A stretch of DNA of 64,000 nucleotides. Source: Lytechinus pictus. Taxonomy: Eukaryota. Below the pieces are notes generated by a model, which worked only from the letters and a program-made list of their open reading frames with translations, had not been told where the DNA came from and did not search any database. The translations under genes and the position numbers were made by a program. The stretch covers positions 16,306,001-16,370,000 of the forward strand of contig NC_087254.1 of NCBI RefSeq assembly GCF_037042905.1, written 5' to 3'. Positions 6,560-61,200 of this stretch are shown one piece after another (positions within the stretch are counted from its first letter, which is position 1; each line of letters starts with the position of its first letter).

Positions 6560-6870
6560 TTGGTGTTGGTGCTGGTGTTGGAAGCACAATTCAGATTGCC
6601 TTCCCTAGCACCAGAACCTAATGTGTCCAGTGTGGGTGTTGGAAGCAGAACTTAGATTGCCTTAGCACCAGCACCTAATATGTTCAGCATTGGTGTTGGA
6701 AGCACAAATTAGATTGCCTTCCCTAGCACCAACACCTAATATGTTCAGCATTGATGTTGGTATTGGAAGCACAAATTACCTAGCCTTAGCACCAGTACCT
6801 GACCTGTTCAGTGTTGGTATTAGTATTGGAAGAATAATTCAGATTGCCTTCCTGAGTACTAACACCTATA
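6560..6870 (+). repeat. Five diverged ~60-bp tandem units, each with hairpin potential
   Basis: Unit consensus ggtgttggaagcacaaattagattgccttccctagcaccaacacctaatatgttcagcatt. Confidence 0.85.
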
Positions 6871-7495
6871 TCGAGTTCACAATCATGGCCCAAATTATAT
6901 TATTGATAGCTCAAATCCTATTGAGATTCATTTGAGGACCAGCTTTATTTTAAGGTGCTGTGCTGATTTTCATCCTAAGGCACATACCATCACCAAAAAA
7001 GGTCAACACCAAATTTGAAATCACCCATTGTCTTAAATATGGGTTTCCAGATGAATTTAAATGTAGTTGTCAAACCTATGCTACAGACAAGAGTCACAAG
7101 AATAATTGAAATGAGATGGAACATTATAAGTATCTTTGTAACAGCTTTTATCTTCATCCTATTCCACACTGACATATATGTATTGCCCTGAAGTCTCAAA
7201 CCCTGTTCTTTTAATTAAAAAAAATTTATATATTTTGATGTTTTCTCTGACAGAAATCATAAGTGTGAATTGAAGGACAGATATAAAAAAGGCAATATTA
7301 CTGTCTGATTTGAAAAAGCATACCTCTTGATGTTCAAGGGGGAAAAGTTATAAAGATTATATTTCCTTTGTCTGAATGTGTATTGTGCAAATCCTAATTT
7401 CTTTTGTAAAATTGTATATAAGATAAACTATGATGGCATGTTATAAACTGTATTTGTATAAAGAAGCATGACTCTTCAATATGGTCTTTGTTCAA

Positions 7496-36561: not shown

Positions 36562-39500
36562 ATGAGACTCCCAAGCAAACAGGTACTTAATGTTTTTTTG
36601 TTTTTTTCTTCTTCAAAAGAATTATACATCTGTGTGAGAAATCAAGTTTAAATGAAGTTTAAAGGGAGGAAATATTTTTGCCTGTGGAGGGTGGGGGTGG
36701 GGGGGGGGCTATACCTGATATTGGTACAACATCCAAAATTGTATGAATATGAATTGCTGTGCCAAGAATAGTGCTTTACTAGAGTTATCAAGGCCTGCAT
36801 GGAACACATAGGAAAGTAACCAATGTGATAATATTTCAAATGCCTATTGTGATTGAATCTTATAGGAGCTCCTGCGGACCTACAGTACATGGGATGCAAC
36901 CAAACAAAAACGTATGTCGGCTCGTATCTCACTCAAGCATGGTCTTGCTTTTCTCCGTCTTCTTAGGGTAAGATTATAATGATTGTTAAGGGTAAGGGTA
37001 AGAGTATAATGATTGATATCAGTTCAGCTAAATATCTAGTGACATGTTAGCTCTCTAAATTCATTGCAGGGTTTAAAAGTAATTATTTATGTTGTACTAA
37101 CGTCCTAACCAAATAAATTTCGAAGGGTACTGAATGTAGGTATCAGCATTTGATGATAAGTCAGGATCGATACTTAATACTTTTTTAATCGGGCAGATGG
37201 AAATATTTTAGTAATAATAGTTCCTAATTTTGAAGCAATAATCCTCAAATTCAGCCCCCCTCCCAAATAACAATTCTTTGAGTTTGTTAGAGACAATGCC
37301 TAGATAACACTTGAAGTGTGTTATTGCAGTAAAAGCTTGCACTTTGACAGCTTTTTTTATATGCAATTTTTAGCTTTTGCTCATGATTTAGTTTGTATTT
37401 GTTGTCCTCAGTATCAGAATGCCTGATCTCAGTGTTTTGTTTTGCTGATAAGACCTTTAGCCCTAATAAGACCATGACATTTTTTAGATAAATCCACTGC
37501 GCAAATTTTGTTGACCACGTTGCGGGCTGACTTTAGTTTCAAGTCTCGCAAACTTTTGAAACCAAAATTGCGACCCCTGATACGCAATTCCGAAATCACG
37601 CAACATTTCGTATGTGCATGCTGACCCAAACTTGCGCAAAAATGTGAATTTGTGTACAAATCCAGCTAAAGTTCATAAATGTATTATTACTTTTCCTTTT
37701 ACTGATTAAAATCAATTAATTTCATCTTGTTTATAGTTTAAATAAAGTCCCTGATAATTTCCATTGAAAAAAAGCATTAAAACAAAAAGTACATGTAGAA
37801 AAACAAAGAAATACATAAGAAATTTATAATCAATAAAATACATAAGAAAGTAAATGTGATGTTGAAATTTGTTGCATTTGATCAGATTCTTATAAAAAGT
37901 CTTTAAACCAAAAATTAGCATTTTAGGGGCATTATTTAGTAAGGGCAAACCTTTGATTTTACGCATTAATTAGCAATGAGATTTCTCACAGAATTTGATC
38001 TAATATTTTTGTAGATTATGCCATGGGTAAGGCACAAGCCAATTTTTTCGCGATCAATGCCTGAGATCACAAGGGGGGCTGAATAACAAGGACACTTTTT
38101 ATGATTTACAAGGTTACATTTTATTTTATATCAAACAGGCTACTGACAAAAGATGTGTGGGGTGATGACAAATTCTGGAGACAAGAAGGTCCTGTAGATT
38201 TATTAACTTGATTCTATGTATGGCTAGATCATTTATTATATTTTCCATGATATAAAGATAGATCACTATCAAGATCAGCATTCTAATATATTTGTGACCC
38301 TATTATCTATTTCCATCTCAGAGTGGGTCATCTCAAAGAATATCACAGCGGAAAGGATCTCCAAGCAGGGTATTCAAAGGAAAGCATAAGCTGTCTCCTG
38401 GTGATGATAGACGAGAGAATAAGAGGTTCAAGAGAGCTCAAGAAGATCAGGGAGAGGTGTCATCAAATATTCTGATGAAAGATGAAGATAAGATGATAAA
38501 AGAGCAGGAATTGCAACCAGAAAATGCAACAAATCTCATGAGAACTGAAACAGTATCTTCCCAGAGCACGTCGACTCTTCTGAGTGGCACAAAGAGTGGA
38601 CCCAGTGACTTTCCACTAGGTCAGAAGATGCAGTATGTACCCCTGCAAGGTCCAGCCAGTAGCAAGGATGGACTGATCGATGATAGTACTGTGTCATCCA
38701 CTTTAGGACCTCAGAATGAATCGTTCCAGGGAAATCCAAAGGCACCAGGGGAACAAGCATCGTTGTCCAGCAGTGAGTCGAGTGCTACTTTTGACAGAGA
38801 GTTCGAGTTGAACTATGAGCTCCAGAAGCCTGGGCCACTTTGGAGAAACAAGCGCAAATCACTGCAACCAAGAAAGGTTCTACGTAAGGTGGCGCCAGAA
38901 GAAGGAAGTGTGTTAGGGAATTACTTGCAGGAAGAATTGCAAACCCAGGCAGAAGACAGTGAAATGAGCATACCTACAGATGAAGGGGAGGTTCTGGAGT
39001 CCGGTCAGAAACACGGTGGGGTTCTTGAACCAGAAAAGGTGATGCTGTTGAGGTGTACAGGGATTACTTCCGTAAGATCACAAAGTCCATCAGTTGTGGA
39101 GTCTGATGGAGAATCCGGCCAGTTGAAACTGTTCATAGATCAAGACCCCATGCTTGCAGAAGGAAACTATTCTTGTGGTTCAGACCAAACTGTTGTTCCA
39201 TCTTCTTCACAAGGAGACACAGGAACTGTCCCTTTCCCAGGTCTTACATGTAGGTTTGAGAGCATTCAAGGCTTTACTGAAAAGAACAACACTGGAGAAT
39301 CAAGCCAGGGAAACCCTCCTTTGCTTGGAGACGGGCTTGCAGATGTGGTGAATAGTTCTTTGTTGGATGAAAGTGTACCTGATGATTGCCTTGACAACTT
39401 GTTGCCAGGCTTAAACTTGCGGCATGTTGAAAGAGCAGCTGCAGAGGGCAATTCTAATGATGAGAAGGCTTGCAGCTCTCAGGAGAAGGTAGACAAGTCA

Positions 39501-42500
39501 AGCAAGGTCAAGAGGCACAAAGGCAAGTCACCTAAAAAGAGTAAGAAATCCTGTAGTGCGAGACGATTAGATATGGCTGTTTTTGGTGATAAAAATCCCG
39601 AAGAAGATGATTCTCAGGCCAACAATGATTTCAACTCACTAGGAAATGCAGGCAAATCCCACAAGGTCAAGAAGCACAAGTACAAATCACCTAAAAAAAG
39701 TAAGAGATCATCAAGTTCAACGCAGATAGATATGAATATTGACAATCGCAGTTCAGTGGAAACTGTAGATCAGTTTCACAAGAAACACAAGACCAAAGGA
39801 CAAAAGGAGAAATCACGTCCTAAACGTAAGACGAAATCTAAAGATGTATCCTCTAACAAATATTCACCACTGCCCAAGAGTCCTGTCTTTGGAAGAATTC
39901 TGCCCACTAGTGATTGGTCCAGCCTTGAGAATCCAGTCACATCGCCTTGCCGTGTCCAGCTAGTGGACTATGTAACCAACACTCAACTGAAGCAGCCTGC
40001 AAGACAAGGTAATGAGGAAAACACTGCTGTTCCTGAAGTAGGCTCAGAAGAGGTAGAAGTCTATCGAGTAGAGGATGTAATAGAAGTAGAAACTGTGATT
40101 GGATCAGCAGATCAGTGTTCTGGTGTCCAAGTACATGAACAGAGTGGGCATACTGTCAAGGAGTTGGATGAGCCACTTGGCACCTCAATGGATCTTGGCA
40201 GCCTTGAAGAGAGAGAAGAATCCTTACGGGCTAATAGGGAAGACAATCAACCTAGCAGCAGCAGCATAGTGGAAGGACAAAGCTCACCCTCTGGTCAAGA
40301 AGGTTATCAAAGCCCAGCTGTAGGACATGACTCAAGCACAGAATGTTCTTCTCAGGCTTCTATCAGAGGACAAAAGGCCAGTAATCAAGTTGTCAGTATC
40401 AAAAAGTTGGAGGAAATGACCGAAATTCTACCAGTTGAAAAGGATGAAGGGATTGATAACCCGTCAGTTGAGAAGGATGTGAAGAAACATAAACCAGAAA
40501 ACATAAAGAAAGCTGTTCGATCCAGAAAGCCTCATGGAGACGTTGCACGAGGAGCAGGTGGATGGGAGCATTCGCTGAGACAGCGCCCTCAGATGGTCAA
40601 ACTGTTCCAGGTTGGCGGGGATTCTAAGACACCAAAGAAAGGAGCACAGAAGGTATCACCAAAGAAGGATAGGTCCCAGAGCCTCCTGCAGTATGGTCAT
40701 TCTATGGTGAGGAGTATAAGTAATTTTCATTAAAAAAAGCAAAAAAAAACAGGTGCTTCTGTTGATACAAATATGGCTTTAAGAATTTCATTTAATTCTT
40801 GTATGATAAAATAGCACTGCATAAGTATATGCCTTCCCCAAGATGCCATGGAAGGGAATTGAACCTCAGACTTTTCATGTCTTTACCAGATGCCTTGACT
40901 AATTGGCCACAGTACTTCCTTTGAAGCTGCATGACATTTTGATGGAAAATATTGTGAATTGTATTCCGCATATAAGAATCTTGCTATAGGATTGGTCAGA
41001 AGTCGGTCACATGACATAGGGTAGTTTCCTCATCAATCTTCACTTGCCGTGATGGACCTCTTTTGTTTGGGGATCTTTTTTCCGCCCATAGGGTCATAAC
41101 ACGTTATGAATTAGTTTGATTACGGAAAAAATGAAGAGGTCAGTGCCGCTCGATTTTGGGTCCATCTTTCTCCATCTTCTGCAGTCACGATCGAGAAAGA
41201 TCTAGGTGGGCGCGCGGAGTGTGGGCCTACATACGCGCCAGCAGTAAAACTTTGCACAAAATAAAAATGCATTGCCCCTCGATTGTTTTGTTGTGACACT
41301 AAAATTCTTTTGTGAGGTCACAATCTTGCTTGATCTCGGATGCTTGCGCACAGTTTGCATACGTGCGCTAGCAATAAAGCAATCATAATCGTCTCGATGG
41401 ATTTTTTTCAAAGGAAATCTTGATTTTAAAAAAAAAGTTGTTCTGGACACATATTGATATTGGTTTTTTCTTCGTTTATAGTGGTTTTCTGATACAGAAT
41501 ATAAAGCATATAATCCCCTCTTGATTTCAGGTGACAAGGCAAACTATCACTTCCTCGGCAAGCTGGATGTACTTGCTATTTTTCTGCAGCTTTGCTTTGA
41601 AAAGATAACTACATCCAGCTTACCTCAAAAGTGATAGTTTGCCCATCACCTTCACCAACGGTGATTATTTGCTTACTATCAAAAACAAATAATATTTGAT
41701 GGGAGATAGTGTTATATTTCTAGCTATATTTTGATGAGATAATGCTAATATTTCAGTGATAACATATTTTAGAAATGACTGATCCAACATTGGGGGAAGG
41801 GGTAAAGAAATACTTTAAGTCAAATATGTTTTTTTTTCTTCAAATTTTTATTTTTTCAATATCTATCTTGTGATATGCCACCCTTTTAGATGCAACCATC
41901 ATCAAAAGAGGCTTCGGATGACGTTGGCTCCTCCCTTGCTGCTCTCTCTACAAATAGGATCAGGAGATGGAGAAAAAAAGAACAGAGAGCTGTTGCTATG
42001 GTAATTATCTATACTCCTTTTTTTTCTTCTCTCCTTTAAGTCTGCTGTTTAAAATGTTATCGTGTTATGCATTCATTGTCTTTTATGCATTTCACTCAAC
42101 TGGTGCATGAGCTATGTTAATGTATATCTTTTTATGTTATTTATGATTTCATTTATTGTGCCTACAAACTATTACAAGAAAGATCCAGCTGCGGCTATTT
42201 TTTTGCATGTGTAATGGAACATGGTAGATTTATTATATTTATTTATTTCTGATATTATGACAGGGTAGCCCATTCACCAATAAGAAGTGGTCTTCCATGG
42301 GGCCCTGAATAACAATAAACATATTTACAAAATGCATAACGTATGTACAGAATGTTACGGCATTAAGATTCACATTAGGATTTGAATGTAAAACGAAACA
42401 TTAACAAACTTAGCAGCAAACAAAACGTAGATCATCAATAAATACAATGTTTGAAAAACTTTGAATGGAATTGAAAGAAAAAAAAATATGAAAAGACTGA

Positions 42501-45500
42501 AGTGATTGTTCCAACATGTTTGGGAGAAGTTATCTTTTATTATTAGCCATATATTGAACTATTTTTTTTATAAATATCATTTTATTTTAATGTTTTGGAT
42601 CAAAGATTAAATTTGCAGAGAAATGTATTCTTCAGCTGCTAATTCATGAGCTCTTATCTTTTTTATTGCAAAAACAGATGCAGAATAAAAACATTTTGCT
42701 ATGTTATACATGTAGGACAATAATAAACAATGACAACTTTACCTGTTTCAACTTACTGAACAAAATGTTGAAATACAAGAGGATTGGAGTGAGATTCGAC
42801 GGCTAAATTATTTGTGTACCTGCCTTTTTATGCCCTTCACAGTTTTATGAATATAAGCAACTTTTAAAAACCCAGTTGTCCTGTTGAAATGAAACCTTGG
42901 TGAAGTGCCTTTTTTTGTTTCCAGATAAATTTGCAGGAGTTGAATGTTCATCCAAGTGTTGTATACCTCCCCAACTATAAAATTACATTTCTCCTAAGTC
43001 CTACAGATTTCTAATACTGTTCCAAAATATTTTACTTGTGCAGTTACCTGTATGTTCATTCAAGCTAAATTTATGGGTTTTTTTTTTTTTGGGGGGGGGG
43101 GGGAGGTTGCAGGAGTTTCTGCACTTTATCGACAAATCATTAATAAATTAAAATTTCATATGATAGAAATTATAAACTACATTTAAATGTAACAATCAAC
43201 GAGATAAATAATATTGACTAAGACTGAGAATTATATTATACATAAGGCATGTAAACTAGTAAGTTGGATGAAATGCTTGAGATAGCTATTTTAAGCAGAG
43301 AACTGCTTGAAGCAATAGCATCCATTTGATGTGACAATGATAAATTACAGGTTTGTTTTCCATAAAAGTGATTTTTTTTCAATTCTCAAATTGATAGCCA
43401 CCTCCTCTGGATGAAAAAGAAAGTGATGGAAAGGAAGCAGGCAGAAAAACAAAGGTCAAAGTTCAGGATGGTAAAGAAAATGATGTAAGTAACTAGAAAG
43501 CTTGGTATTGAGATAGATTTTATAGGGGAAATAGAAGAAGGTTTTGGGCCAAATAGAGATTTTTGAAGGTGAAGAAGATGGATAACAGAAGTTAGAAAAT
43601 GAGAAGAAGATGAAGGAGGAGGAGAGGGGAGGGAAAAGAAGAAGAGGAGGAAGGAGGAAGGGAAGAGAGAGAGGGGAGGAAAGAAGGGAATGGACATGAG
43701 CAGAAGGGAAGTTGTGAGAATGAAAAGAGGAAGGAGGAGAAAAAGGAAAAGAGTTATTTTATTTTGACATTTTCATGCGGCTGTGTCATGTTCGTCAGTT
43801 TTGTGGAATTATCAAGAAGGGATTTTATAATGTCAAATACTGATTTTTCTGCCATTAGTCACACCAGGGATTTACGTTACCATTGCAAAGTATTAAGAAA
43901 AAGTATGTCTGCCCTCTCAAATTCTAAATTTCCTGGGGTGCATTTTATCCTTGCATCTGAATGGCTTAGGCAGATTTGCCAGTGGAAATCACTGATCATG
44001 AAATGAGTACCCTCCAGAAGTGATTTTTTTTCTTTTTTAACATGCATTGATCAGTAGAAATAATTGAATAGATTATCCAGGGATGCCACTTTTCACACTA
44101 AAGTTTGAATTTGGATGTTTTCAACACATTTTCGGGCCATAGAAATCACCTTTTTGTTTTAGGAAAAGGATAACTCTAGATGATTTTCAGACTTAAAAAA
44201 AAAATCATTTCTAAATGGCACCCCCAGTATTTGTGCACTCGTTTAGATCAATTCCATCTTTTTAATCATAGCTATTTTGTATTTTCTTTCCAGTCTACAG
44301 ATGCATTCTGCAGAGGACAGTTGGTGTTTGGTAAATTGAAAGGTTTCTGCTGGTGGCCTGGTCAGATTGTCCATCACTATGAGAGGAACATCCGGGAACT
44401 TCCTCCTCCCCTGACCAGATGGATCCAGTGGTTTGGAGATGGGAAGTTTACACTGGTAACATCTTCAAAAATACTTACATCACCATAAAAATGTATCCAT
44501 AAAAAGTTAAACGATGTAGAGCAAGATAAGACAGAGTGGCACATTAGTAAGGGTTCACGTAGGCGTGTGAAACCTCACATGGATGATGATATTTCACATT
44601 GCATAATTCAATTCCATTCATTTCAATTGTTTTATTTTCCACTTTCACTTTCACTTTCAATTTCGTATTTACAATTATGATACAATTGACATAGTAACAT
44701 ATAATCACATTTGAAGTATATACAAAAATTGATAACATAACATTACAATAGACAATTATCAAATTGTAATATAAATAATTGAAAGGGAATGACTGCATTG
44801 TGAATGCTGTGGATCATTATCCTCCTAAACCTAACCCTAAAGATTATACATGTACAAGAGTCTAAAGGACAAATGCATTTCTAAATATGAATAGCAATGC
44901 AACTATAAAACAACGATGTGCTGTGCAACCAATAATTTTGAATCCCACCAGGATCCCGTAACACAAAGGTTAGCGATTAATCGTATGCTTGATTTTTACG
45001 ATTGATTGTACATTGTAGTCAATGCAATCAATTGTAGAAAAATGTTTTGCGATGAATGCTATACTTTGTGTTACTGGTCCCAGATAAACGGTCAAGTTAA
45101 AATATCTATCTTGATTCAATTTCTCATTGTTAAAAAAGCATCTGAAAGGAATTTTTGTCAGATTACGATTAGGGTCATAGGACATCTGTTAGCAGTGTTG
45201 ATTTTTTGACATTGTCAATGTTCATTCATCTTTCAGCTGAGCCTCAGTCAGGTTGCAGGCTTTGAAGAGTTCCCAACCTTGTTCAGTTCATCTACCTTCC
45301 AGAAGCTATCCCTGTACCAGAAAGCTTGCTATGAAGCTCTTAATGTAGGTCAAAATCTTTGCATCTTCAAGATATTCTGTTTTTACCTTCCTTAGATTCC
45401 ATAAATTAACAATTTGATGAAACTCTGCGAAGCAATGGAAATTGCCGTAACATACCTATACTGACGTTTAGGACTTGGCTAATTAATAATGATGATTATT

Positions 45501-48500
45501 ATTTTAGTACCGTAATAATGACTCTAAGGTAATTATACAGTGCGTATCAAAAAAAGTTTACACTTAGAAAAAATCCTATAAAATTATACATTTGTAATAT
45601 CCTGAAGATTTTTCCACATTTCAACATTGGTACAGATCCATTTAAGCAAATGACGATATAACTGTCGAAAAATATTTCCGCCTGAGTGAGCACCACTTAC
45701 TTTTGAAAAGTTAGTGAAAAATGATTTGCGCAGAACTTTGAAATAGTGATGCGAATAAAAGTTGACCTTAATCATGAAGAACACATGGAATTTAGCTAGT
45801 AAAATTGATTTGAAGATATCTTTTACCTTTTTAACTTGTTTCCTTGCCCAAAACACTTGGAAGAGTGCATACTAAGTGTTGAAATTTCAATTTGGGTGGC
45901 AAAATTGTTACAAAATGCTTGAATGTATCCGTTCTATTTCAATTGACGAAAAGTGCAAGGGAAATGTATGAGAAATGTTTCGCAGGGTAAGTTTGATTTC
46001 GCCCTTTCCCCTTGACACAGCATGAAAACGAGCATTTCTGCGCAAACATATTTTCGCGAGTTTTACAATAATGGACAGTGCTCACTCAAGTGTAACATTC
46101 TGTCATAACTTTTACTTTCATTGGATAGATGAGACCCAAACCCAAGAATATATGTGAAAAAATTACCCACATGTTGTATATTTTTTAATTCCTAGGGCTT
46201 TTTCAAAGTGTAAACTTTTTTTTTATACGCACTGTATAATAATGATTATATGATGATAATTCTATGATAATAATAATAGTAATAAGATAATTATGATAAT
46301 GTAATAATGATACTTGTAATAATATTTATTATCATTGAATTAGATTACAAATCTTCCATTGCTGGATGCAGCAAATATTTGGCCAAAATTTGGGAGATAA
46401 TGGGCCTATTCTGAAGTCGAGTTTAACCATGGTCTGACCCTGTAGTAAACTAATGGGAAGCCAAAGATGTCAAAATTTTCTTAAATTTGTATGATTCTCA
46501 TGTTACCTTTGCTCTTTCCTAATTTTATAATGATGTAGACAATTGACTCATTTACCATCCCAAGACAGTTGTGAATGATATGAGTGCCAAGGAGCTGATT
46601 ATTAACCTGTACTGTTAGATATTCATGTCATAATTGGCTTTCTATAGTTAAACCACAACTTCAAACCAGAGTTTGAATTAAACCTGACTTCAGAACACGA
46701 GCCAATGATATCACCAGATGAAGAAAGGAGAAGAATGCACAGAACTACATAGTTTCTATAAAACTCATTATAAATATTTTACAATCGTAAAAACTTGTAT
46801 TGAGGCAGTTAAAATCTGTCATTTGCAATTTCAGAAAAACTCTTCATACACCCTTGACCTTTTAATTACATTGGCTCATTCGGAAATGAGATTAATGATA
46901 ATGATAATATGGTCCATTTATATAGCACAGCTACTATACGCAACTACGCTTGATACTTGGTATCATATTATTACCCCGGCAGTAGCTGAGCCACCATATA
47001 GGCGCTAAAGCATTCAAGGGCGAAGTCCTACCGGGTACCTAACTACCTACTCACCTCAAATGATGTGCGTGTATATTATTCAAGTTTACATTGTCTTCAT
47101 TGTTCAATTCTGATAATGTTTAGCTTGCAGCAAAGCGAGCCGGCAAGGAATTCGACATTGCCGAGCCAATTCCACCGACCCCTCCGACAGCCCCATGTTC
47201 TATCAAGGAGAGACAGGAGTATAAGGCTAAGATGCTGGAGAGATGTAAGGTGATGCAAGACTGGGCTTTCGACCGGTTCAACCCTGAAGGACCAGAAAGC
47301 ATCCAACCATCGGAAGGTAATGATTCATAATTATTAGCAAATGATCACTGACAAGTGCAGGGGTAGGTCTAGGATAAGGGTTGGGGGGGATTCTGCCTGC
47401 CCCCTTGCCCTTGATCTGCAACTTGGTGTCAGTGAAAGTACAAAGTCATTCTGTAGGCAATTTTGAAGTACCTGAGCTCTTTTTCTGAAGCAAAGATAAG
47501 GAAAAATAAGAGAGGCTTCTTTGTATCACTATGAAGATAGGTATACCATGTATATAGGCAGTCCCTTATGAGAAAAAATGATCATCGTCATATTTATACT
47601 ATTAATGATCAAACTGCTGGGCCTGAAACTGAAGCCTGGATTAACAAAGCTGATAGAAGCAGGAATCTAGACCTGATAGTTGGCATTGGTACAGTGCATG
47701 CCCAATTATTTATTACTTGTTTGTTCTGTTTAATTATTCATTTTATTCCATTACCACGATGAAGAACCAAAGAAGAAAATTGTTAGAATGAAATAGGTAA
47801 TAGAACAACCGTATCCTTGTATTAAATTGTGAAAATAAGACAAGACACAAAACACATACAGACTCTAAAAATGTGGAGCGTTGTGGCCCAGTGGATTAGT
47901 CTCCGGACTTTGAAACAGAGGGTCGTGGGTTCAAATCCCAGCCATGGCGTAGTTTCCTTCAGCAAGAAATTTATCCACATTGTGCTGCACTCGACCCAGG
48001 TGAGGTAAATGGGTACCTGTTGGCAGGAATTTATTCCTTGAAATGCCGAACGCTGGAAGCCAGCTGCTTGAGCTACAGCCGGGGTAATAATATTCAAGTC
48101 CTTTTGAAGCACATAGAGACGTTATTCATAATGTTTTATGCGCTATACAAGAACTGACTATTATTATTATTAAAAATATTTTTATTAGAGTTACCCTGTG
48201 AGTTTCCCAATTAGTATATTGTTCGGGGTTTTTTTTTTCCTTTTTTTAGAGGAGAAGAAAACACCCCCTATCCCAAAGTCACCCACCCCCAGCCCAGAGA
48301 AAAAGAAACCTGATCAAAAGGAATCATTTGAAGATAAACGAGGTATGATATGAATACGATATATGATGTGAATATGAATACAGTCCGACCTCTCTTATCC
48401 GGCCTCCCCTTATCCAGATCTCTCTATTATCCGGATGCACACTTGCCGAGATTTTTTTTTTCCAATTCAATCTAGTACGTGAGGAAATGAGATTTCAATC

Positions 48501-51500
48501 TAAACTCAATCCTGTATGCAAACTCACTTTGATTACATATATTTTCCAATATAGTCTACATACAACAACATTATTTTTCATGAAAATATCTCACCCAAAT
48601 CACCGAAAGAACTTAGGCAGGATAATTTTCCAGTAAATCAGGGCGCAGCGCAAACATTTCATCATGTTCTCTTTTTGTTTCCCGGGAAAAACAACACATG
48701 TCTCGCTAGCTAACGCTAGGCTGACATTGCGAAGCTGCAATACCTGCCGCGATGATCTAATTGTAAAACTTTATTTCATCGAGTCATTTTCTTTCGAGGT
48801 ATGCTCGATGTAAACCTCAACCATTTTAGCAGGTAAATTATCCAACAGTTTTGGCCATCGATCGATTTCATTTCCGTAAAAATACCGCCTATAATTTGCA
48901 CTGACGCTGCAGTGAATACTGTCTGTACGCGCGCCCACTACAATAGATAACGTGTAGCTACTGCCATTGGGAGGCTGAGGCAGCAGCTGCATGTATTTAA
49001 TATTGGGTCTCCCAGATCAAGATAAATCCCTTATCCGGATTGGTGCCGGTCCCAACGTGTCCAGATAAGAGAGGTTGGGCTGTATGATATATGAATAGTA
49101 TACAGAAACATTTGTATTAAGCGATATATAAATGTTGCATGTTATTATTATTATTATTTTCTATTTAAACAGAAATGAACCAGCAGCCTTGATAGTCTCA
49201 CCTAAAATCCTCAACTACTCTCATCCGGGCCCCATCTGACAAAGAGTTACGATTGATCCAATCAATCTCAATTGTATGGAAATCCATCCATACCATAATT
49301 TTTTTCTACAGGAAATTAGCTGTATCTCCTTAGTAAACAAAGAGAATCACACTGAATCTTCAAGAGAATGATGAACGTATGAATATACATCATATCTAGA
49401 AAATATTTAAACAAATTTGCATGTTAGATGTTGACGTCGCTGGCCGTCCATAGGTGAGGTTGATCGGATTAATCACAACTCTTTGGAAGACAGGGCCCTG
49501 ACAGCAGCATTCACCACCAAATACATTCATGCCACACTAACTATGCTCCAAAGAAGCAAAGCAATTACTTTCCTCTAAAAAAAAAACAATTTCAGTTTTC
49601 TGTATGAATAACGTTATAGGCTAATTCATTCTCCCTATTCTTGATGGTTATCTCAAAATGTTAATTTTTAAGACTAGTTATTTATAATACATAGACAATT
49701 GGAGACCACACAAAGTATTGGTCATTTTACTCTCCCTGTAAGGGGGCCATAAGAGGGGTTTGAGGAGTATGGGGGGAGGGGATTCTGCAAGTGACATTGT
49801 AAAACAATTACATGAGGTACTGAACGTACATGGGGTGAGAGAGTTGTGCTGTTATTTCTCTAAGAATACTGCAGCTGACCGGTTGTGTAGGCATTGGTGT
49901 TGGTTTGCTTCTCATATAGACACCAGAAATAGTACATAATAAAATAGTAAGGTATAAAATATTTTGAGTTTGTAGTACAGTGTATTGAAGCTCATTTTGA
50001 CATTTTTCTCATTTCAGGAGAGAGTATGAAGAATGTAAGGGCTGGGAAAGTGACAGTTGAAGGTATGATGTATTTGGCATGCATCATTTCTTAAGTTGCA
50101 TTCAAAATACTGTTTGAATATCTCATCAATATTATCATCATTTTAATCATCGGCATATCATTTTTGTCATTATTGTGATTCATTGCCTTTCTACAGTATT
50201 ATTGCATTATCTTGTATACTAGTCTTGAATTAATTCTTTAATTATGTCGCATATTTGAAATTGGGAACATTTATGCATTTTGTGTCACTAAGCTGATATG
50301 GTTTTACATGTGACCAGCAAACCGAAATCCCAACAATAAGGGGGTGTTGGAAGAAATTATTTGCAATCAATCGCCAATATTCTGTTGTAATTTTACAATG
50401 AATAGATCAATTTTAGCTGTAGTAAATCTGATCACACTTCTTCATAAAAGAAGCAGTTCAGCAATCAATCACAAATTTACATTTGATTTAAAGAGATGTG
50501 ATTGATTTAGGCACGGAAAATAGACTTGCAACTGATCGCAAGTTTCTTGCAACGCCCCATATATAATATAAATAATATAAGGGAAGGTTCTATTAAATAG
50601 TTAAAGCATTAATTTGGTCTTCAAAAAATAAAAATAAGGCAATTTGCTTATGTGAAAGAGTAACACTTCTTCTTCATACTGTAAAAAGTTGAAGTTGTGA
50701 AGTTAAATGAAACACAAGATACAGGAGGTGGTTTTTTTACTGTTTTTTCCTGGACAGCTTGAAAATCGAGATTGTAGTGTGCAAACCTCAAGCTTGAGTG
50801 AACCCAAAACTTTAAAACCATGTTTTCTCCTTATTCTTTGAACATCACCAAATTTCTCCCTTTATTCAATCAAGTAAATGTGGGTTAATGTTGGTGAATT
50901 TTGACAAATTAAAATCATTTTAAAGCTTAGGGTTTGCTCTGTCAAGCTCAGTATAAAATCTCTAATTAATTATGAGCCACTTATTGTTGGTTTTGGGGTG
51001 GCAGATCACACATTATCTTTATCCCTATTTTTAGGATTAGCCTAATAATGTAAGAAATTTCATTTATATGCGGGCAATGCCATAAAATGATCGACCTTTT
51101 TGTACGTCCGACCCCTATTTTTCTCAGGTCTTACTTTTTATAAACTGATCAAGTCATTGTCCTTTGATAACATTTCAGACTGTCAAAAGAACATGAAATC
51201 AGAGACAGAAAATTTCATGAAGGTCCCACACATATGGGGGGTCCGACGTACATATTTCATGGAATTGCCCATACGCAAAGTACATGTATACTAGTGAGAC
51301 AAGAAAAGGATAGTCTTCCAATGTCTGTTATGTATCAGCCTCGCATCCTTTGGCAAGGCGTAGATATACACTTTACCACTATCCACCCAGGGCTCCGTAA
51401 CACAAAGGTTTGCAATCAATCGCTAAATACCAATGGCCAATCAAGATCGTTGTTGCACACGCACTCTGTTTAAAATACTGACTGGGAACCAATCAGTGCG

Positions 51501-52240
51501 GTTCTTTCGTACTTGAAATTCATCGCAAACCTTTGTGTTACGGAGCCCAGGTGTTAAATGGGTACCTGGTAGGGATGTGAAAGTCTATGTAGTATGCCTA
51601 TTTACCGAGCCTTAGGACTCTTGTTGGAATGCTCTATGGGGAGTGGAGAAAGTGCATACATTGTGTGCAGGCATGCCAGGATCCGATGACAGATTAGAAG
51701 TGCTCCGTGGTGTTACCATTGTCCGTACGAGGAATTTTGGCCGGGGCGTGGTGCTGCTATCGTTCATAAACTCTTTGGTTGGCGCCTGGTGCAGGCCCAG
51801 CGCTGGTCTGGTGCTCATAAAAGCAGCACCAAAATAGCCTGGCCCAGGTGCGAGCTATTTTAGCCTGCGCCATTCATAAACTCAAAATTTTACGACTTAG
51901 CGTGGGCCTGGTCCGGACCAGCGAGTTACTGAAAGCGGTATTAGAGATTTTATTCTAATGTATTAAGCACTATGTAAAAGTGGAATGTTATTATTATTAT
52001 TATGTATATCTTCTCGTAGATATCTGCATTGGATGCGGTAGTACCAGCCTGGCTGCCAAACATCCACTCTTTGTAGGAGGCCTTTGTGAAGTCTGTAGGG
52101 TAAGACAAAGTCATGAGGATGATAATGGCAGTAATGATGATAATGATGAGGAGAACATTGATGGAGATGATAGATTTGGTGATGGTGGTGGTGGTAATGA
52201 TGGTGAATTTGATGATGGTAATAGTCGTAAGAATGAGGAC

Positions 52241-52279
<39 letters not shown>

Positions 52280-55200
52280 ATGAGGATGATGGTGATGATG
52301 ATGATGAGGAGGAGGATTAGGATCGTNNNNNNNNNNNNNNNNNNNNNNNNNNNNNNNNNNNNNNNNNNNNNNNNNNNNNNNNNNNNNNNNNNNNNNNNNN
52401 NNNNNNNNNNNNNNNNNNNNNNNNNNNNNNNNNNNNNNNNNNNNNNNNNNNNNNNNNNNNNNNNNNNNNNNNNNNNNNNNNTGATGATGATGGTCATCAT
52501 GATGGTGTTGATGTCAATGATGATCATTATCATGGTAGTGATAATAATGTCGTTCATGATGGTGGTGGTACATGGTATTGATGTTCATCTTCGTAGTGGT
52601 GGTGATGATTCAGAAATTGATGTTATGATAATGATGAAGATGATAATTTTTCAATAAACTTTACTTTTGATTACTAAATTTATATAATTATTTTTACGGT
52701 CTTTTTTATTTGATTTCTGATTATACAGATTTTTTTTTTGCAGATTGAGTACTTGGAAGTAGCCTACCTGTATGACTGTGAAGGGTACCAGGTATTTCAT
52801 TTTACTATTTAGTTTTATCATGATCAATAAAAGTTTTTATCGTTTCATTCTTCAGAAATATATTTTATGAGGAAAATGTATATTATGCATAAACATAGTG
52901 AACTGTGTTAGGCAGAAAATAAGGTATTTAAAATTACTTTATTAAAGCCCTGTTCTTGCAGCCACAAGTTATGAATAGAGAGAAAAGGCATCAGCATAGT
53001 TGCTGATGTGGTGGTAACCCCCCCCCCCCACAAAATATTGTCACACAAAATGTATATTTTTGGTGTGAACATTATTGTATTGCATTTGTCTGCATTATCA
53101 AAGTGTACCTTACTTATTTTACTATGTTGTCTACAAAACAATTACAGGAAAAGATGGAATAACCATTTCTTACATGTGTCCAAGATTTTACTGCCTGTTT
53201 GCTTCGCTCTTCCAAATTTCAGGAATATCAAAAACTTGTCCCATTAATGCTACTGCACACCTTACTATTGGTCTGTGACCCGATTTGGGAATAAATCGTA
53301 CTAAAATTTGATGCGAATATTGACAAATGGAACATCTTACTATATAAAATTTCTAAATCTTTTTATACTTACAAATTTGTGACTGTGCTACCATCCTTAT
53401 GAGGATAAAAGCAATTTGCCTCCAATATGAAACTTATTTTGACTTTACTCCAAAAAAAGGTTTGCAATCATTCAATTTGTTATATTAGTATTCTTACAGT
53501 AAATTTGAAATGAAAAATAGTTTTCATTCACATTTTCAGAAAATAAACAAAATGTGATTTGTTCCAAAGTCGCATTGTGGACCAGTCATAAGGTGTGCAG
53601 AAGCTTTTTTGCCTCATCCAATGTCACTGGAGTGAGATGTAGTGAGTGTTATCCCAAGACAGCAGATTATCCATCAAAATTGAATCTGTTACACTTAGGC
53701 GATTCATTGTTTTATTTTCCTGCAGGCTCATTGTTGTATCTGTGCCGAGGGTGACAAGATCACGCTTTGTGATAATCAAGGTTGCTATCACTCTTACTGC
53801 ACAGCTTGCATGGATTATCTTGTTGCGCCACAAGAATCAAACAGGGTGAGTAAGAAACTTTTTTTTCTGATCGAAAATTCATCGTTAGAACACTGAAATG
53901 TATGAATACTATATGTTGTAATTTGGTTGAGTACCTCAAAACAATTTTAAAAATGCATTTTCCTGTTTTATAGTCAACAAATCGCATGAAATGAAACATG
54001 AAAGATGGAAAGAGAGTGGCTAAGATTACTCGTCAAGAGAAAGAGGTTGTTTTAATTTTAATTGAGTTGTTTGTAAGATATAACATAGAAAGGGGTTGTT
54101 GCAATTGCAGTAAAACGTTTGTAATTGTAATTGAATTGTTCACATAACTTTACACTTCAATTCAATTCAAGACTTTATTCCAGACACAGCTGCATAAGCA
54201 AAGGTCCATATAAACAAACAAAGTATACATCAAGACAGACATACAGAGATAAAGCTAGATGGAACAAAGAACAGATAATTATGTATAGAGAGTAGAACAA
54301 GGTATAAAATAATCACACTAAAATTATACTAGAAATTAACAATGAATACACAAAACAAAATGACAGCAATGTATAAAAAGTATACTGAAAACATTTACAT
54401 ATGGCAATATAAGTAACTTGTTTACAGTCTAAAGATTTTTCTACAATATAGCAGGTCCTTTATAAAAAATGGTGGATTTGTTAAGTTCAGCAAATGGCAA
54501 AGAAGGGTGAAATTTACTTCTATTTCATATACTATAAGAATGCATTGAATGCTACGATGTGAAGTACTTTTAAACTTGACTCTTTCTTCCCACTTATAAA
54601 CCTCAAGGTATCCAACCAAGATCCTTGGTCCTGCTACCTCTGTTCGGGTGACCGTTGCCATGGTTACTTGACACGCCGAGACGACTGGCAGGAGCAGCTG
54701 GTGGAGTTTTTCAACCGCGATCAGATCGCCGATTTTGAACCCCTGCGAATGTACAAGCCCCTCCTCCTAGCTGAGCGTAGACCAATCAGAGTCTTGTCTC
54801 TTTTCGATGGACTAGGCACAGGTAGCCTGTAACTTTTTGTAAAATGTATCATTAGGAATGGGCTATAAATGGATGATTTTGGGGGTATTTTGTGTTCCTT
54901 TTACCTTATCTCAACTGGCAATATTTTTTGTTGTGGGTCCGAGAAAAAAGTGTGCCGGGTCAAAATCCAAAATGGCCGCCTAAACCCCCCCCCCCCCCAT
55001 CACATTTTTGGTCACAACTGCTTTATTTGGTGGTCTTTTTCTCTGGTTTTGGTTATCTATTCATATGTAATTGGGGGGCAGGCTACTTGTTTTTCCTAAA
55101 ATTAGTATTTTTAAACCATGATTTGTATAGTTAAAAGGTGATTTTACTTAAATTAACAATTTTTTAGAGCCCCTTTCAGCCAGAAATGTAGGTTTCATCG

Positions 55201-58200
55201 TCTTGTGGTTCTTGGATGTTAGACGATACCAGTTGAACAGTAGCAATCAGCTTCATATAGCTATATTGCTTTTATTCCTCTAATTTGGGTTTTATGGATA
55301 TTTGCGAAATGTACTATAATACATCTTGTTGATATCTATTTTCACTGTTTCTGTTATGACTTTTATTATTGTTTTGTTATATATTACTTTTGTATATTGT
55401 ATATTTTGAAATTCTGATACTTATGTGAATGCAGAAATAAAATGAAATCAACTAAAGTCAACCAAACTTAAGTTATCAAAGCAGTAATCAAATTTGGATA
55501 TTTTATTACGGATGTCGCATGTATTATGATATTGTAATTGTAAATGTTGTATGCCACTATTGTAATCTGTAAGGATACATTTATTAGTAATAATGAATAT
55601 GTAAGGCTATATGACACTGCAAATGAATATTATATTTTATTGTTGCTTGAATAATCAGTGGTTTATCAGTGGAAGAACAGCATATATGTATTTTTCACTT
55701 GATCTATTCCTTTGACCTTGCAACTTGCAATCATTTTTTTTGCGTCCCCAGTGCCTGGCTGCAAAAAGCGAACTGAAACACTGTGACCTGCAGGTCTCTC
55801 CCAATGTAACTGCTATTTTAACTCGATATATTTGGGGTGTGTCTGTGTCTACTGTACCTCTTAAAGGACAAATCACGCAAATATCCATATGACCTTTCCT
55901 TCTTGACCTTTGACCTTAATATTGCTAGGTATGTTATTGTTATAAGGAGCTTGCTTTGTTTGAGTGAGAAGGCTGTCACTGGGTCTGTTGTACATTACGA
56001 GGGACAGATCAACCAAATGTTCATGACTTTTCACCTTTGACCTTGCCAGGTATGCTTGTGTTGAAGGAGCTTGGTTTTGATGTGGAGTGTTACTATGCAT
56101 CTGAAGTGAGTGAGGAGGCCATCACTGTGTCTACTGTACGCCTGAAGGGACAGATCAAACAGATTGGCGATGTTCAGAAGATCACCCCTAAGGAGGTACG
56201 ATAAACAGTAAAAAAAATCTTATTTTAGAGAGAGAGTAGCAGCAGTCTGATATTACTCAAACATTAGATACAAATGTTTTATGGAACAATTAAAAAGTTC
56301 AATTGGAATGATTAATTTGTTGGGTGAAAACGACAAGAAATAAGATATTCATTTTGACAAGTCTCCGATGATACCACAAGGGTTATTCACGCTACTGCTG
56401 TGTGAAGTAAAAAAAAGTTCTTAAACTTTGAACCAAGAGGCACAGGGCTCAAATCCCACCTTGGCTTTGATGTCCTGTAGCAAAGCATTTGTCTACATTT
56501 GCCAGGTGTAAATGGGTACCTGGGGTCCGTCTTACAAAGAGTTGCGATTGATCCGATCAATCGCAACTATGGAAAGCCAGCAAAGTCAAGATATAAAATG
56601 CATGTTTGTTCAAATTATTTTTAGATATGACTGTATATCCATAAATTCAGTGATTTCTTGATAATTTGATGTGTTCTCCTTTGTTCACAAAGGACATTTT
56701 GCAAATTTCCTGTAGAAATGTTTTTGACACTGATGGAATTCCAAAGAGTTACGATTGATTGGATCAATCAATCATAACTCCTAATCAATTGTAATTCTTT
56801 TTAGACAGGGCCCTGATATGCTCAAGCTCAAGTTACCAGCTCTGGGGCCCGTTGCAGAAAAAGTTACGATCATACGCAACTAAAAAAATATTGAGCAACT
56901 TGATTTTCAGCCAATGAAGCACTCGTATTTATTACTTGCGCTTGATATTTTAACCTGCGTTTAAACGCAACTCTTTCTGCAACAGGCCCCTGAAGCATCA
57001 TGAGCATCACAGCATGCTGTGTATGAGTGTGATCCAAGTGGTAACAACATAAATAGAATTTACTACAATATCTAAAGGCTTTGTGACAAGTATCAAGGAT
57101 TTTCGTAAGAGTCTCAGAGACTTATCCAGCACGACATATTTGAATTTCCATCCATTGGAATTCATATTTGTAAAAGAAATGTGTATGTATGGCCCTTGAT
57201 TTTGATTTATATTTGTAGCAAGATGAATTTAGTTCTTATGTTAGTTAGGCAGTCTATAGACCAAGAGACATTATTTATAGTATTATTCACTGTTCACACG
57301 TATTTTATGTAAAAATACCAAAGATTTGAAGGAATCAGTCTCGACTAGCACTTGTGCTACCTTCTGGTTCCTTCTTAACAACATTCAACCATATACGTAT
57401 CTTTTTGATAGATTATCAATATTGGAAACTGTGACTGGGATCTTAAAAAATGTTAAAACATTTGTTTTAGGTTTATACACGCACGTCACATTTTATGTAT
57501 TCAGATTTATCGTTTTGTATTCTCATTTTATCCTTTATAATGTTAGCAATTACATCTGTATACTAGAATAGTTACGTTTGTGCTGTGATGTTAACACATT
57601 GTTATCGTTATTGTTATTGTTGTTAAGTAAATAAATAAACTCAAACTCAAATCATTTGGTAAAGATTCAAATGAATATGAAAAATCCATATTTTATTGTT
57701 AGAAATAGAAATCTGAGAATAGAGATATTCAAAAAATAAAATGATTGTGGGCTCTGCAGCCACTGTGCAGTGCCAGATCGACGAGGCTATATCCCTTAAA
57801 ATGTTCAACGCCAAACAGGGCAACTCCCATCTATTTACGTATTTTGATCTGACGTGGCTGGAATTTCAAACCCCCGACCTCCGGGTTGTGAGACGGACGC
57901 CCTACCAACTGAGCCAACACACCGGTTAGTGTGATGTGCTTGTTCCCATATTGATGGTGATTTTGAATTTTGTGTACAGCTCAAATCGTGGGGACCCTTT
58001 GACCTTCTCATTGGGGGTAGCCCATGCAACGACCTCTCCATTGTCAATCCTGCCCGAAAGGGCCTCGGTGGAGGGACGGGCCTCCTCTTCTTTGAGTTCT
58101 ACCGGATCTTGCGTGACCTTCAGCCCCTTCCAGATGACCCTCGACCTTTCTTCTGGCTGTTTGAGAACGTAGTGTTCATGGGACGCAAGGATAAGCTTGC

Positions 58201-61200
58201 CATCTGCAGGTTCCTTCAGGTGTGTGTTTTTGTCTATTCATGTGTAACTCATATTTCTTTACCTGTGTTTTGTTTAGGAATTTTCTGCTTTACCAATCAA
58301 AGTTGTCATTCTAAATTTTCAGCATATTTTTCAGCTATAGAAAACACAATTTTTTTTCCAAATGTGCCCATTTTAGATAAGTATCACATTTTTTATCAAA
58401 TCCCATCTAGTAACGCTACAAGAAAAGTAATCAAATTTTTTTTTTTTTTTTTTTTAGTAATTCCATAACGATAATTTAAAAAATAATGGGTATTTGTATA
58501 GCACATATATCCAACTTGTTGGGTGCTCAAGGCACTCCTCTCTCTCTATCACCCCAGCTGAAAGCTAGTCTACCATTTCCAATGCTCACATCCTTTAACC
58601 CAATGTGCTTAATAGGCCCTGTGGTTAGGCATTGATCCCCATTGCCGGGTCTCTTGGTAAGGAATCAAAGCCATAAGTCCTCTGCTTTATAACTTAGCAT
58701 GTTTGCCCTGCGTGAGTTATAATAACCATCACTATTTGTTCATGTTTCTCAGTGTAATCCTGTGATGATAGATTCCCGTCACATGTCGCCCACCCACAGA
58801 GCCAGGTACTACTGGGGAAACCTACCAGGAATGCATCGGTAAGAAACTTCAATTGGTGCTGAGCTGTTGAAACCATTTAATTAAAAAATATATATTTTAG
58901 AGCTGATATGAAAATAGTGGCAAACTCATAGGCCCGAATTCACAAAGGTGGTTTTGAAAACCCACGGTTAAATCCATGGTTTATGCAGATTTCCTGTATA
59001 AATTACGCTTAATTTAGGGTGTATCGGGTGCATGTATAAAAAATTTCCAATGGTGATGCGCGATTTTGTCACAGTGCGCCAAATTGACGCCTGTTACCAT
59101 GGTTAGATATGCTATTTCATTAATGAGTCCACTGTTTGAAGAGTGGACTGCTTAATTCAAAACAGTGGATTCATGAATAAAACAGAGTGGATAACCACAG
59201 CAGCAGCAGACCTGCCAACCAGTACGTTTTTTGCGTATTTAGTACGTTTTTACAACCAAAATACGGCAGTACGTTTTTCTTTAAAAAAATAAGTTTTTGT
59301 AAAAAATAAAATTGTAATTTATTGAGAAAAATCATCTCTATATGTCTCTATTTTATAAAACTTACACAAATATGGTTATTAGATCAATGTAATTTCAGGT
59401 AACTTGTTTTTTTTTTCAATCATTTTGTTAAAACCAGGGTGAGTTATACACATGTTTCAATGTTTTTTTTCCATCTGCAAGAGCAGTGCGCATTTTAGCT
59501 TGCATGCAGCTTAAGTGCGCGATGAGTGAGTGCGCCATGCATTTTATTATGAAGTACACTTTTTTGGGGGAAAAATACAGTTTTTTTTATTACAGAATAC
59601 AATTTTTCATTTCCAGAGTTTGGCAGGTCTGCAACAGGCGTCAATTTGGCGCACTGTGACAAAAGCGCATATGGGCATTTTCACCACAGATGGACACAGA
59701 GGCAAAAAAATCAAGTTGATATTCATGTCAAATGCTTTATGTTTTTTAATAAAACAAGACCTGAAGTTTCTGAGACACAAATTTTTCCGACTCTGGCAGC
59801 CATTTTTTATTTCAAAATGGCTGCCAAAGTATGGATACAAATTAGTGTTGAAAATAGCGTATTGATACATATTTTGTTTTGACAGATTTTTAAAGAACAG
59901 GTTTGATCATGATGTTTTCGCCTGTGATTTAGCTTGCTATTATAACACTTTTTAAAATCCCACAGAAAGAAACACCAGTAATTCATTCATCTGATAAAAA
60001 AACATTGATGAAGTATGTGATATGGTATGTAATGTCAGTTACCGAAAACATGAACTTTTTTTTCTCATTTCCTGGAAAAGAGGATATATAATATGAAACT
60101 TGGTAGATTTCCTCTCTAGGTAACACCCCTCCCTTCTACACCAAAATTAAAGATTACCAATTAACAATGAAGCCATACGGTACCATTAAATATATGTAAT
60201 GTCAGTTACCAAGTGGAGAATGTAATGTCAGTTACCATGATAAAACGTTGGTTACCAATATTGAAATGCAAATATGTGGTCAATTTTATGGAGAAGAAAT
60301 ATTGTACACTTGTTATTTAAGTCTCACTTTAAAAGTCACACCAGAAGGAGCTTGCTATTGACTTTTAAAAGGTATAGTTCACAAGGAATACTATATAAAA
60401 TTATGAAGGAAGTTGCATTCCCATCGTGCAAAAAAAAATTACTATGAAATTGTTTTGTACATGCACTTACCAACTACCAAGTACTTAATTGTTTGTATCA
60501 GACAATTTTTTGTTTGGTTTTCGGGGGGGGGGGTAAGGGGTACTTTTCCCAACCTATTGCCTAAATCTGCAACATTTTCAAGCTTAACATTGTGATGAAG
60601 GGGATTTCCAGGGTCCCTTTTTTAGTTTCTAGGATTCTTTTGAGCATTGCCTCGCTAAAAGTAAATTCCTGGTTTTTATACCTGTTAGTGTGGATGTGTG
60701 ATACAATTTTGTTTTTGGTTTACAAGTATAGATGAAAAGTGAAATTTGACAGTTCTGAGCAATGTTGCATGGATCTACTAAAACTGTTTTTTTTTTTAAT
60801 TTACAAATAGTTCAGTTTCAGTTTAGAAGCTGGAGTTTATTTTTTATTTTTTGTTGACAGCTAAAAAAAGAAATTAGCAAAGAAAATGATTAAACAAATT
60901 ATGAAGAGAATTGAAATCGGACAGATATGAACAAGCATTGCTTGCACTGACCAGAATAGAAATCAATAAAACTACATGGCTGCATGAGATTCGGGGGAGG
61001 GGTACGTGTAGCCTAGGGGAGGAGACCCTTATTCATTTTGCCTTTTTTGAGGGGAGGGGGAGGTTGGAGAAGGAAAAGGTTTAAAAAGTCAATATAAAAC
61101 TGATGAATATATTATGGGTGTATAGTCAGAAAAATCCATGTGTACAGTCAATGCAATATTAGATTACTATAGGAAAACATGTAGCTGCTATGACCCCACC

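Follow-up and report, generated by a model that had tools for sequence, protein, structure and literature searches.

A homologue of the nucleosome-contacting core of the DNMT3A1 ubiquitin-dependent recruitment region in a sea urchin DNMT3

The subject of this analysis is a DNMT3-type DNA methyltransferase gene of the sea urchin Lytechinus pictus. It lies in a stretch of 64,000 nucleotides (NCBI RefSeq assembly GCF_037042905.1, contig NC_087254.1, positions 16,306,001 to 16,370,000 of the forward strand), here called the window, whose numbering is used throughout. A sequence-only reading had proposed that the gene carries the ubiquitin-dependent recruitment region (UDR) known from mammalian DNMT3A1, the region that binds the nucleosome acidic patch and histone H2A ubiquitylated at K119 (H2AK119ub) by the Polycomb complex PRC1. 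We found that the peptide in question is a real, expressed and strongly conserved homologue of the UDR core, and that it is not a full UDR: the nucleosome-contacting core of that proposal stood, while its ubiquitin-reading part did not.

The DNMT3 gene and its transcripts

The exons in the window correspond to residues 8-1456 of a 1527-aa Lytechinus variegatus DNMT3A-like protein (P0002; tblastn), to which they are about 90% identical, and the annotation of P0002 shows the same exon chain. Pfam places PF00855, PF17980, PF21255 and PF00145 in that order in P0002, which is the PWWP-ADD-C5-methyltransferase layout of the DNMT3 family and bears out the earlier description of the gene as an invertebrate DNMT3. 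We take it to be the single DNMT3 gene of the urchin, a pro-orthologue of vertebrate DNMT3A and DNMT3B. The features of the locus are as follows.

36866..36952, + strand: upstream coding exon (approximate tblastn limits with P0002; six-echinoderm N-terminal alignment)
38322..40706, + strand: giant exon of 795 codons, phase 0/0 (AG acceptor at 38320-21, open frame, GT donor at 40707, junction 40706/41890)
40548..40616, + strand: putative nucleosome-anchor core, homologue of human DNMT3A1 171-193 (translation, PDB phmmer, Pfam, vertebrate profile, invariant columns)
40617..40706, + strand: Lys-rich tract with T-P-K-K and S-P-K-K, directly after the core (sequence; echinoderm alignment)
41890..42000, + strand: 37-codon exon with RRWRKKE[Q/P]RAVAM (translation; RNA junctions on both sides)
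43398..43484, + strand: 29-codon (87-nt) exon between the small exon and the PWWP exon (RNA junctions 42000/43398 and 43484/44294; P0002 872-900)
44294..44455, + strand: first PWWP-domain exon (sequence; RNA junction; Pfam PWWP at P0002 908-990)
45237..64000, + strand: remaining exons, with the rest of the PWWP domain, the ADD zinc fingers and the C5-methyltransferase domain (tblastn, P0002 Pfam domains)

The giant exon is about 90% identical to P0002 residues 36-835 (tblastn) and encodes an N-terminal region that is mostly unconserved and probably disordered. The 23-residue core peptide, whose translation is exactly as first quoted, ends 30 codons before the 3' end of this exon. The peptide of the 37-codon exon also ends as quoted; it does not lie just before the PWWP exon, as had been claimed, for the 87-nt exon stands between them. 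Downstream, P0002 residues 955-1456 account for 12 further exon matches (tblastn), the last reaching 63999, and the gene continues past the end of the window. A run of N (gap or masked) at about 52280-52480 falls in the intron after the first ADD exon and is flanked by long triplet repeats, in which open frames read poly-Asp or poly-Met.

The interval 39900-44620 was compared with the raw stranded reads of two RNA-seq runs and with two sets of contigs, all under the same species label. The raw stranded reads define the junctions 40706/41890, 42000/43398 and 43484/44294, all GT..AG, with support in run X14 of three, eight and five reads, respectively, and a single 1935-nt RNA contig spans all four exons from the giant exon through the PWWP exon. 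The core-encoding exon is thus expressed and spliced to the PWWP exon, as the sequence-only reading had assumed. An alternative donor after L-F-Q was rejected, the RNA junctions giving it no support. RNA depth is also high within introns at 41500-41680 and 42236-42431, with the opposite read orientation at 41500-41560; the intervals 41500-41560 and 42236-42431 were rejected as extra exons because their reads are loose-ended on both sides and resemble dispersed repeats transcribed elsewhere.

At position 41984, in the 37-codon exon, the codon in the window is CAG (Q). With C in place of A it is CCG (P) in all nine X14 reads that cover the site and in the X1 contig, but not in the X2 contig. The residue is P in every other echinoderm sequence that has the segment, and the Q is a minor allele or a change private to the window.

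Homology and conservation of the core

When 73 residues around the motif were compared with all 177,635 PDB sequences by phmmer, the five best matches were all DNMT3A UDR chains. The best, the 98-residue UDR construct 8u5h (E=0.006), aligned without gaps to human DNMT3A 171-193, and the identity of the W-E-x-S-L-R-Q-R-P-x5-F-Q-x-G spacing to that of the human protein, noted at the outset, is confirmed by this alignment. Among 24,736 Pfam models the same peptide had a sole match, PF22855 (DNM3A_N; positions 161-192 of 280, E=0.007). Pfam scans of the full-length echinoderm DNMT3 proteins yielded no PF22855 match, and at E-values up to 10 no family was returned for the Diadema segment, an echinoid fragment or a 141-residue L. 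variegatus segment. A hidden Markov model (HMM) built solely from 36 distinct vertebrate DNMT3A cores located the site in seven of seven echinoderm N-termini, with E-values at proteome-scale Z=20000 that ranged from 1.8e-6 in Acanthaster, through 6.8e-4 in the window, to 0.04 in Diadema. The pattern of 13 residues that is invariant in echinoderms occurs once in the genome, against a chance expectation of 6e-9 (six-frame, 812-Mb genome). By these comparisons the window peptide and the nucleosome-contacting core of the DNMT3A1 UDR are genuine homologues.

The alternative that the resemblance arose by chance or convergence, without common ancestry, draws on the shortness of the motif and the modest E-values of the single searches (0.006 in the PDB, 0.007 in Pfam). 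Against it stand the tiny genome-wide expectation and the presence of the motif in every echinoderm and DNMT3A sequence examined and in many of DNMT3B. Its place in these orthologues is equivalent, about 95-130 residues upstream of the PWWP domain. Given that this position recurs in orthologues of about 25 sampled lineages, the alternative is effectively refuted, and we regard it as extremely improbable.

Other searches returned little. E-values of short motifs are too weak against the 5.8 billion sequences of the word-based homologue search, which found only one other echinoid exon for the urchin motif region, with full-length urchin proteins excluded by its length filter, and only the query itself for the Acanthaster motif region; a feature search of the ESM Atlas gave no usable match. 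Two adjacent open reading frames (P0003 and P0005) on a 12.5-kb contig of ENA assembly ERZ26222911, filed as a metagenome, are pieces of an echinoid-like DNMT3 giant exon that includes the core motif, and the ERZ26222911 sample thus contains animal DNA.

No other part of the N-terminus of echinoderm DNMT3 is conserved as strongly as the core. In an alignment of the N-termini of six full-length echinoderm DNMT3s (about 730-1070 residues, 1274 columns), 32 columns are invariant and 13 of these fall inside the 25-column core window, so the motif is indeed conserved among echinoderm orthologues. The invariant pattern, R G.. G W E. S L R Q. P..... F Q. G, corresponds to human R171, G172, G175, W176, E177, S179, L180, R181, Q182, P184, F190, Q191 and G193. 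In Lytechinus, Strongylocentrotus, two Diadema species, Acanthaster, Asterias and one echinoid fragment, the motif precedes the PWWP tryptophans by about 95-130 residues. Among the RNA alleles there were 11 replacement changes in 268 flanking codons, compared with one silent change in the motif. The second-most conserved island, W..K.K..I..G..F..L, with seven invariant columns per 25 in the six DNMT3s, is encoded by exon 36866..36952 at the very start of the protein (P0002 about 16-40).

The conserved positions are those through which the human region contacts histones. R181 enters the canonical anchor of the acidic patch and R171 a variant anchor, with G175, W176 and L180 beside them, and F190 and Q191 contact the groove between the H2A docking domain and H3 (PMC11266573; PMC11624362). 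All five residues of the putative acidic-patch U-turn (R171, R181, G175, W176 and L180) are invariant and fixed in spacing in the six echinoderm sequences, and in the groove segment F, Q and G are invariant, with V in place of R187 and V, L or A, depending on the species, in place of A192. In human DNMT3A1 nucleosome binding falls 193-fold in R171A, 6.8-fold in W176A, 687-fold in L180A and more than 1000-fold in F190A, and is abolished in R181A (PMC11266573). Since the invariant echinoderm positions correspond to residues whose mutation weakens or abolishes human nucleosome binding, a histone-contact role for the core is suggested. The urchin histones themselves retain the partner surfaces: H2A keeps the acidic-patch residues and H3 keeps L109, R129 and R134.

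The segment downstream of the core

In human DNMT3A1 the ubiquitin and DNA contacts lie just after the core and in a helix that begins there (PMC11266573). The sequence-only reading held that this helix is retained in the urchin as the R-W-[K/R] string of exon 41890-42000, displaced by an insertion of 45-50 residues, so that the gene would encode a full UDR that reads PRC1-deposited H2AK119ub. The string is there: R-R-W-R-K-K, followed by A-V-A-M, is spliced in frame in the next exon and loosely resembles R-W-K-R-E...V-I-A-G-M in human, bat and other DNMT3A. It lies 55 residues after the core G, compared with 15 in human, and the extra spacing is therefore 40 residues. Further points in favour of H2AK119ub reading are the loci for RAWUL-domain proteins (RING1/PCGF-type) in the genome and the K118/K119 site that H2A keeps, from which we judge that H2AK119ub is probably made in the urchin, and the fact that human ubiquitin contacts are many and individually weak (PMC11624362).

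The case against a displaced helix comes from several directions. Phmmer with the peptide of exon 41890-42000 found no PDB match, an HMM of the vertebrate helix scored at most 0.3 bits anywhere in the seven echinoderm N-termini, and the aromatic ubiquitin contacts Y196, Y197 and W206, together with L207 and W210, have no detectable counterpart in any echinoderm examined. The segment reads S-T-P-W-R-K-K-E-P-R-A-V-A in S. purpuratus, L-I-K-R-K-K-P-R-E-V-A in Diadema setosum, where K replaces W, and L-L-Q-Q-K-M-P-F-R-D-V-L in Acanthaster; sea stars have no W, and the segment is missing in Asterias and in the Diadema antillarum model. On these alignments the tryptophan is not conserved and the central proline is: a P follows K-K-E in every other species and in the X14 reads and X1 contig described above, though not in the X2 contig. 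AlphaFold2, given the echinoderm alignment, predicted only a five-residue helix at W-E-H-S-L and none downstream, whereas in a control with a sawfish DNMT3A alignment it recovered a short helix and the known long one (residues 47-75 of the modelled segment; mean predicted local distance difference test 76-88 in the 10-residue blocks 41-70). Finally, non-mammalian DNMT3B keeps the core without the helix, which makes a single gain in DNMT3A more parsimonious. Sequence comparison and structure prediction agree in detecting no ubiquitin-contacting helix in urchin DNMT3, and we consider a full, interrupted UDR unlikely.

The models of Diadema antillarum and Asterias lack the segment, so exon 41890-42000 may be optional. 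A K-K-x-P-(F)-R-x-V-x-x-P-P-P motif (alignment columns about 110-135), to which no known function was matched, is common to Lytechinus, Strongylocentrotus, Diadema setosum and Acanthaster.

What does follow the core, in all six echinoderm proteins, is a set of Lys-rich S/TPKK stretches; in the urchin the tract begins straight after F-Q-V-G and contains no aromatic residues. The human basic tetrad K200-R203 lies near DNA at superhelical location 0 (SHL0; PMC11266573), and in Lytechinus a KK is collinear with K200/R201, in a low-complexity stretch where the alignment is unreliable. Compared with the mammalian DNMT3A1 UDR (residues about 164-219; PDB 8u5h, 8uw1 and 8qzm; PMC11266573, PMC11624362 and PMC11352909), the urchin region thus belongs to the same family and the same place upstream of PWWP, keeps R171, G175, W176, L180, R181, F190, Q191 and G193 over the ungapped 171-193, and has a basic tract after the core. 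It differs in having neither the helix nor its aromatics, in having V for both R187 and A192, in the S/TPKK repeats that follow the core, and in lying at the end of an N-terminus whose length, about 780 residues, is unusual.

SPKK units are DNA-binding motifs of the sea-urchin sperm histones H1 and H2B. The echinoderm DNMT3s have two to three S/T-P-K-K units in a Lys-rich tract, in this case in a methyltransferase; by analogy the tract might bind DNA and might possibly be phosphorylated by cyclin-dependent kinases.

Origin and proposed function of the core

A domain search listed 120 matches, all echinoderm or vertebrate; hemichordates, amphioxus, tunicates, cyclostomes, protostomes and cnidarians were outside the sample. 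In a midpoint-rooted maximum-likelihood tree of the region from PWWP to the C-terminus, support was 100/100 for echinoderms, 100/99 for vertebrate DNMT3A, 96/95 for vertebrate DNMT3B and 100/100 for DNMT3A and DNMT3B together. The core was found in all three groups. In DNMT3B of the lizard Zootoca vivipara (P0053) it reads G-W-E-N-S-L-R-Q-K-P-P-P-R-I-V-F-Q-A-G, and in teleost DNMT3B (P0023, P0040, P0092, P0112 and P0117) it is partial, S/G-L-R-Q-R-P-x-P-R-T-I-F-Q-A-G, with C for the W and without the first arginine, both of which the lizard protein keeps. These non-mammalian DNMT3Bs have the S-L-R-Q-[RK]-P-x5-F-Q-A-G core followed by a basic stretch, without the helix, and this core-only layout is common to them and to echinoderm DNMT3. 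Among the echinoderm and vertebrate sequences examined, the Y-Y...W...W helix was seen only in DNMT3A.

Because the core is present in echinoids, asteroids, DNMT3A and non-mammalian DNMT3B, and because the echinoderm gene falls outside the DNMT3A and DNMT3B group, the core most likely predates the split of the two. By parsimony, the simplest history would place its origin no later than the deuterostome ancestor that echinoderms and vertebrates share, and the ubiquitin-contact helix was most likely gained in the vertebrate DNMT3A lineage after the duplication. A pre-vertebrate origin, as first suggested, thus holds for the core; its extension to H2AK119ub- or Polycomb-guided methylation depended on the helix and is not supported. 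Human DNMT3B is not known to have the core, which teleost and lizard DNMT3B keep, and mammalian DNMT3B may have lost it. Some annotated fish DNMT3A isoforms, as a comparison of P0030 with P0033 of Amphiprion ocellaris shows, lack both the core and the first part of the helix, which suggests UDR-less splice forms. Squamate DNMT3A (P0022 and P0039) has C for W176 and P for Q182.

We think it likely that the urchin region, with the Lys-rich S/TPKK tract after it, anchors the protein to nucleosomes independently of ubiquitin, as a homologue of the nucleosome-surface half of the UDR without its ubiquitin helix; the nucleosome binding, the contact of the basic tract with DNA and the independence of ubiquitin are all extrapolated from sequence. 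The core peptide would form a U-turn on the H2A-H2B acidic patch, with its second arginine (human R181) in the canonical anchor cavity, its first (R171) in the variant site, and the W and L packed beside these arginine anchors. The F-Q-x-G segment would lie in the groove between the H2A docking domain and H3, and the Lys-rich S/TPKK tract would reach nucleosomal DNA. The core could then act with the PWWP and ADD readers farther downstream in the protein to dock the methyltransferase on nucleosomes, whether or not their H2A is ubiquitylated. The core half of the human UDR binds unmodified nucleosomes too, and on H3K36me2 nucleosomes it works in cooperation with the PWWP domain (PMC11624362), a cooperation that fits an animal with mainly gene-body methylation. 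The inferred mode, an arginine in the H2A E61/D90/E92 cavity, would be the same as that of the LANA peptide, the chromatin-binding sequence of spumavirus GAG and the catalytic-like domain of DNMT3B3. These are unrelated in sequence to the urchin core, whose relation to the UDR is by descent; the GAG sequence has an interface and fold similar to the UDR by convergence (PMC11624362).

Several observations weigh against such an anchor. The PF22855 match scored 16.7 bits, below the 27-bit gathering cut-off. The position of human R187, where R187A costs the human protein 30-fold in binding, is V in the window, and each echinoderm has a basic residue close by, at a position that varies. At A192, where A192E impairs human binding, camarodont urchins have V and Diadema has L; Diadema also has C at the R183 position. 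Since C replaces W176 in both squamate DNMT3A and teleost DNMT3B, the core can be retained without every one of its contacts. For a predicted complex of urchin H2A 12-120, H2B 28-123 and a 41-residue peptide the score was 0.30, the mark being 0.34, and it is evidence neither way. Lastly, human ubiquitin contacts being many and weak, a non-homologous urchin segment could still touch ubiquitin.

Two other accounts of the core have to be set beside the ubiquitin-independent anchor. One develops the last point: the core would position the protein while a lineage-specific downstream element, for which the S/TPKK tract or the K-K-x-P-R-x-V-x-x-P-P motif could be candidates, touches ubiquitin, so that urchin DNMT3 does read H2AK119ub. 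We give this a small probability; if true, it would mean Polycomb-linked de novo methylation in an animal with mosaic gene-body methylation, predating vertebrates. The other is that the homologous core has been kept for a different job that involves no nucleosome docking, as a partner-binding or regulatory motif, a nuclear import signal or a degron. Docking by the urchin core is deduced from sequence and the secondary contacts at R187 and A192 differ, and in knockout cells localisation and bulk methylation changed little with human R181A (PMC11266573), so the cellular role of the core is not fully understood even in mammals. The invariant positions, however, are histone contacts and not those of a generic basic signal, and the contacted histone surfaces are identical in the urchin; we consider a different job improbable.

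In the full text of the literature searched we found no report of the UDR or its core motif in invertebrates, although an earlier remark is possible. The one published UDR alignment that we found is restricted to six mammals, namely human, bovine, rat, mouse, koala and platypus (PMC11266573, Supplementary Fig. 5), the structural papers examined treat the UDR solely for mammalian DNMT3A1, and the motif is without Pfam annotation outside vertebrates. Our results suggest that the UDR has two parts with different histories, an old anchor to the nucleosome surface and a ubiquitin helix seen only in vertebrate DNMT3A. The suggested order of events is that DNMT3 docked on the nucleosome core first and was coupled to Polycomb later, in vertebrates. 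Urchin DNMT3 would then be a natural core-only variant with which acidic-patch binding could be separated from ubiquitin reading.

One observation concerns the urchin histone genes. An H2B copy at 6701-7018 (- strand) of locus L005 (G000:C101), in a unit of a 7.46-kb tandem histone repeat, is frameshifted close to its C-terminus, so that it ends ..TAVPPTSSRGAC. An intact 123-residue H2B is encoded by most other units of the repeat, and the frameshifted copy either has decayed or reflects an error of the assembly.

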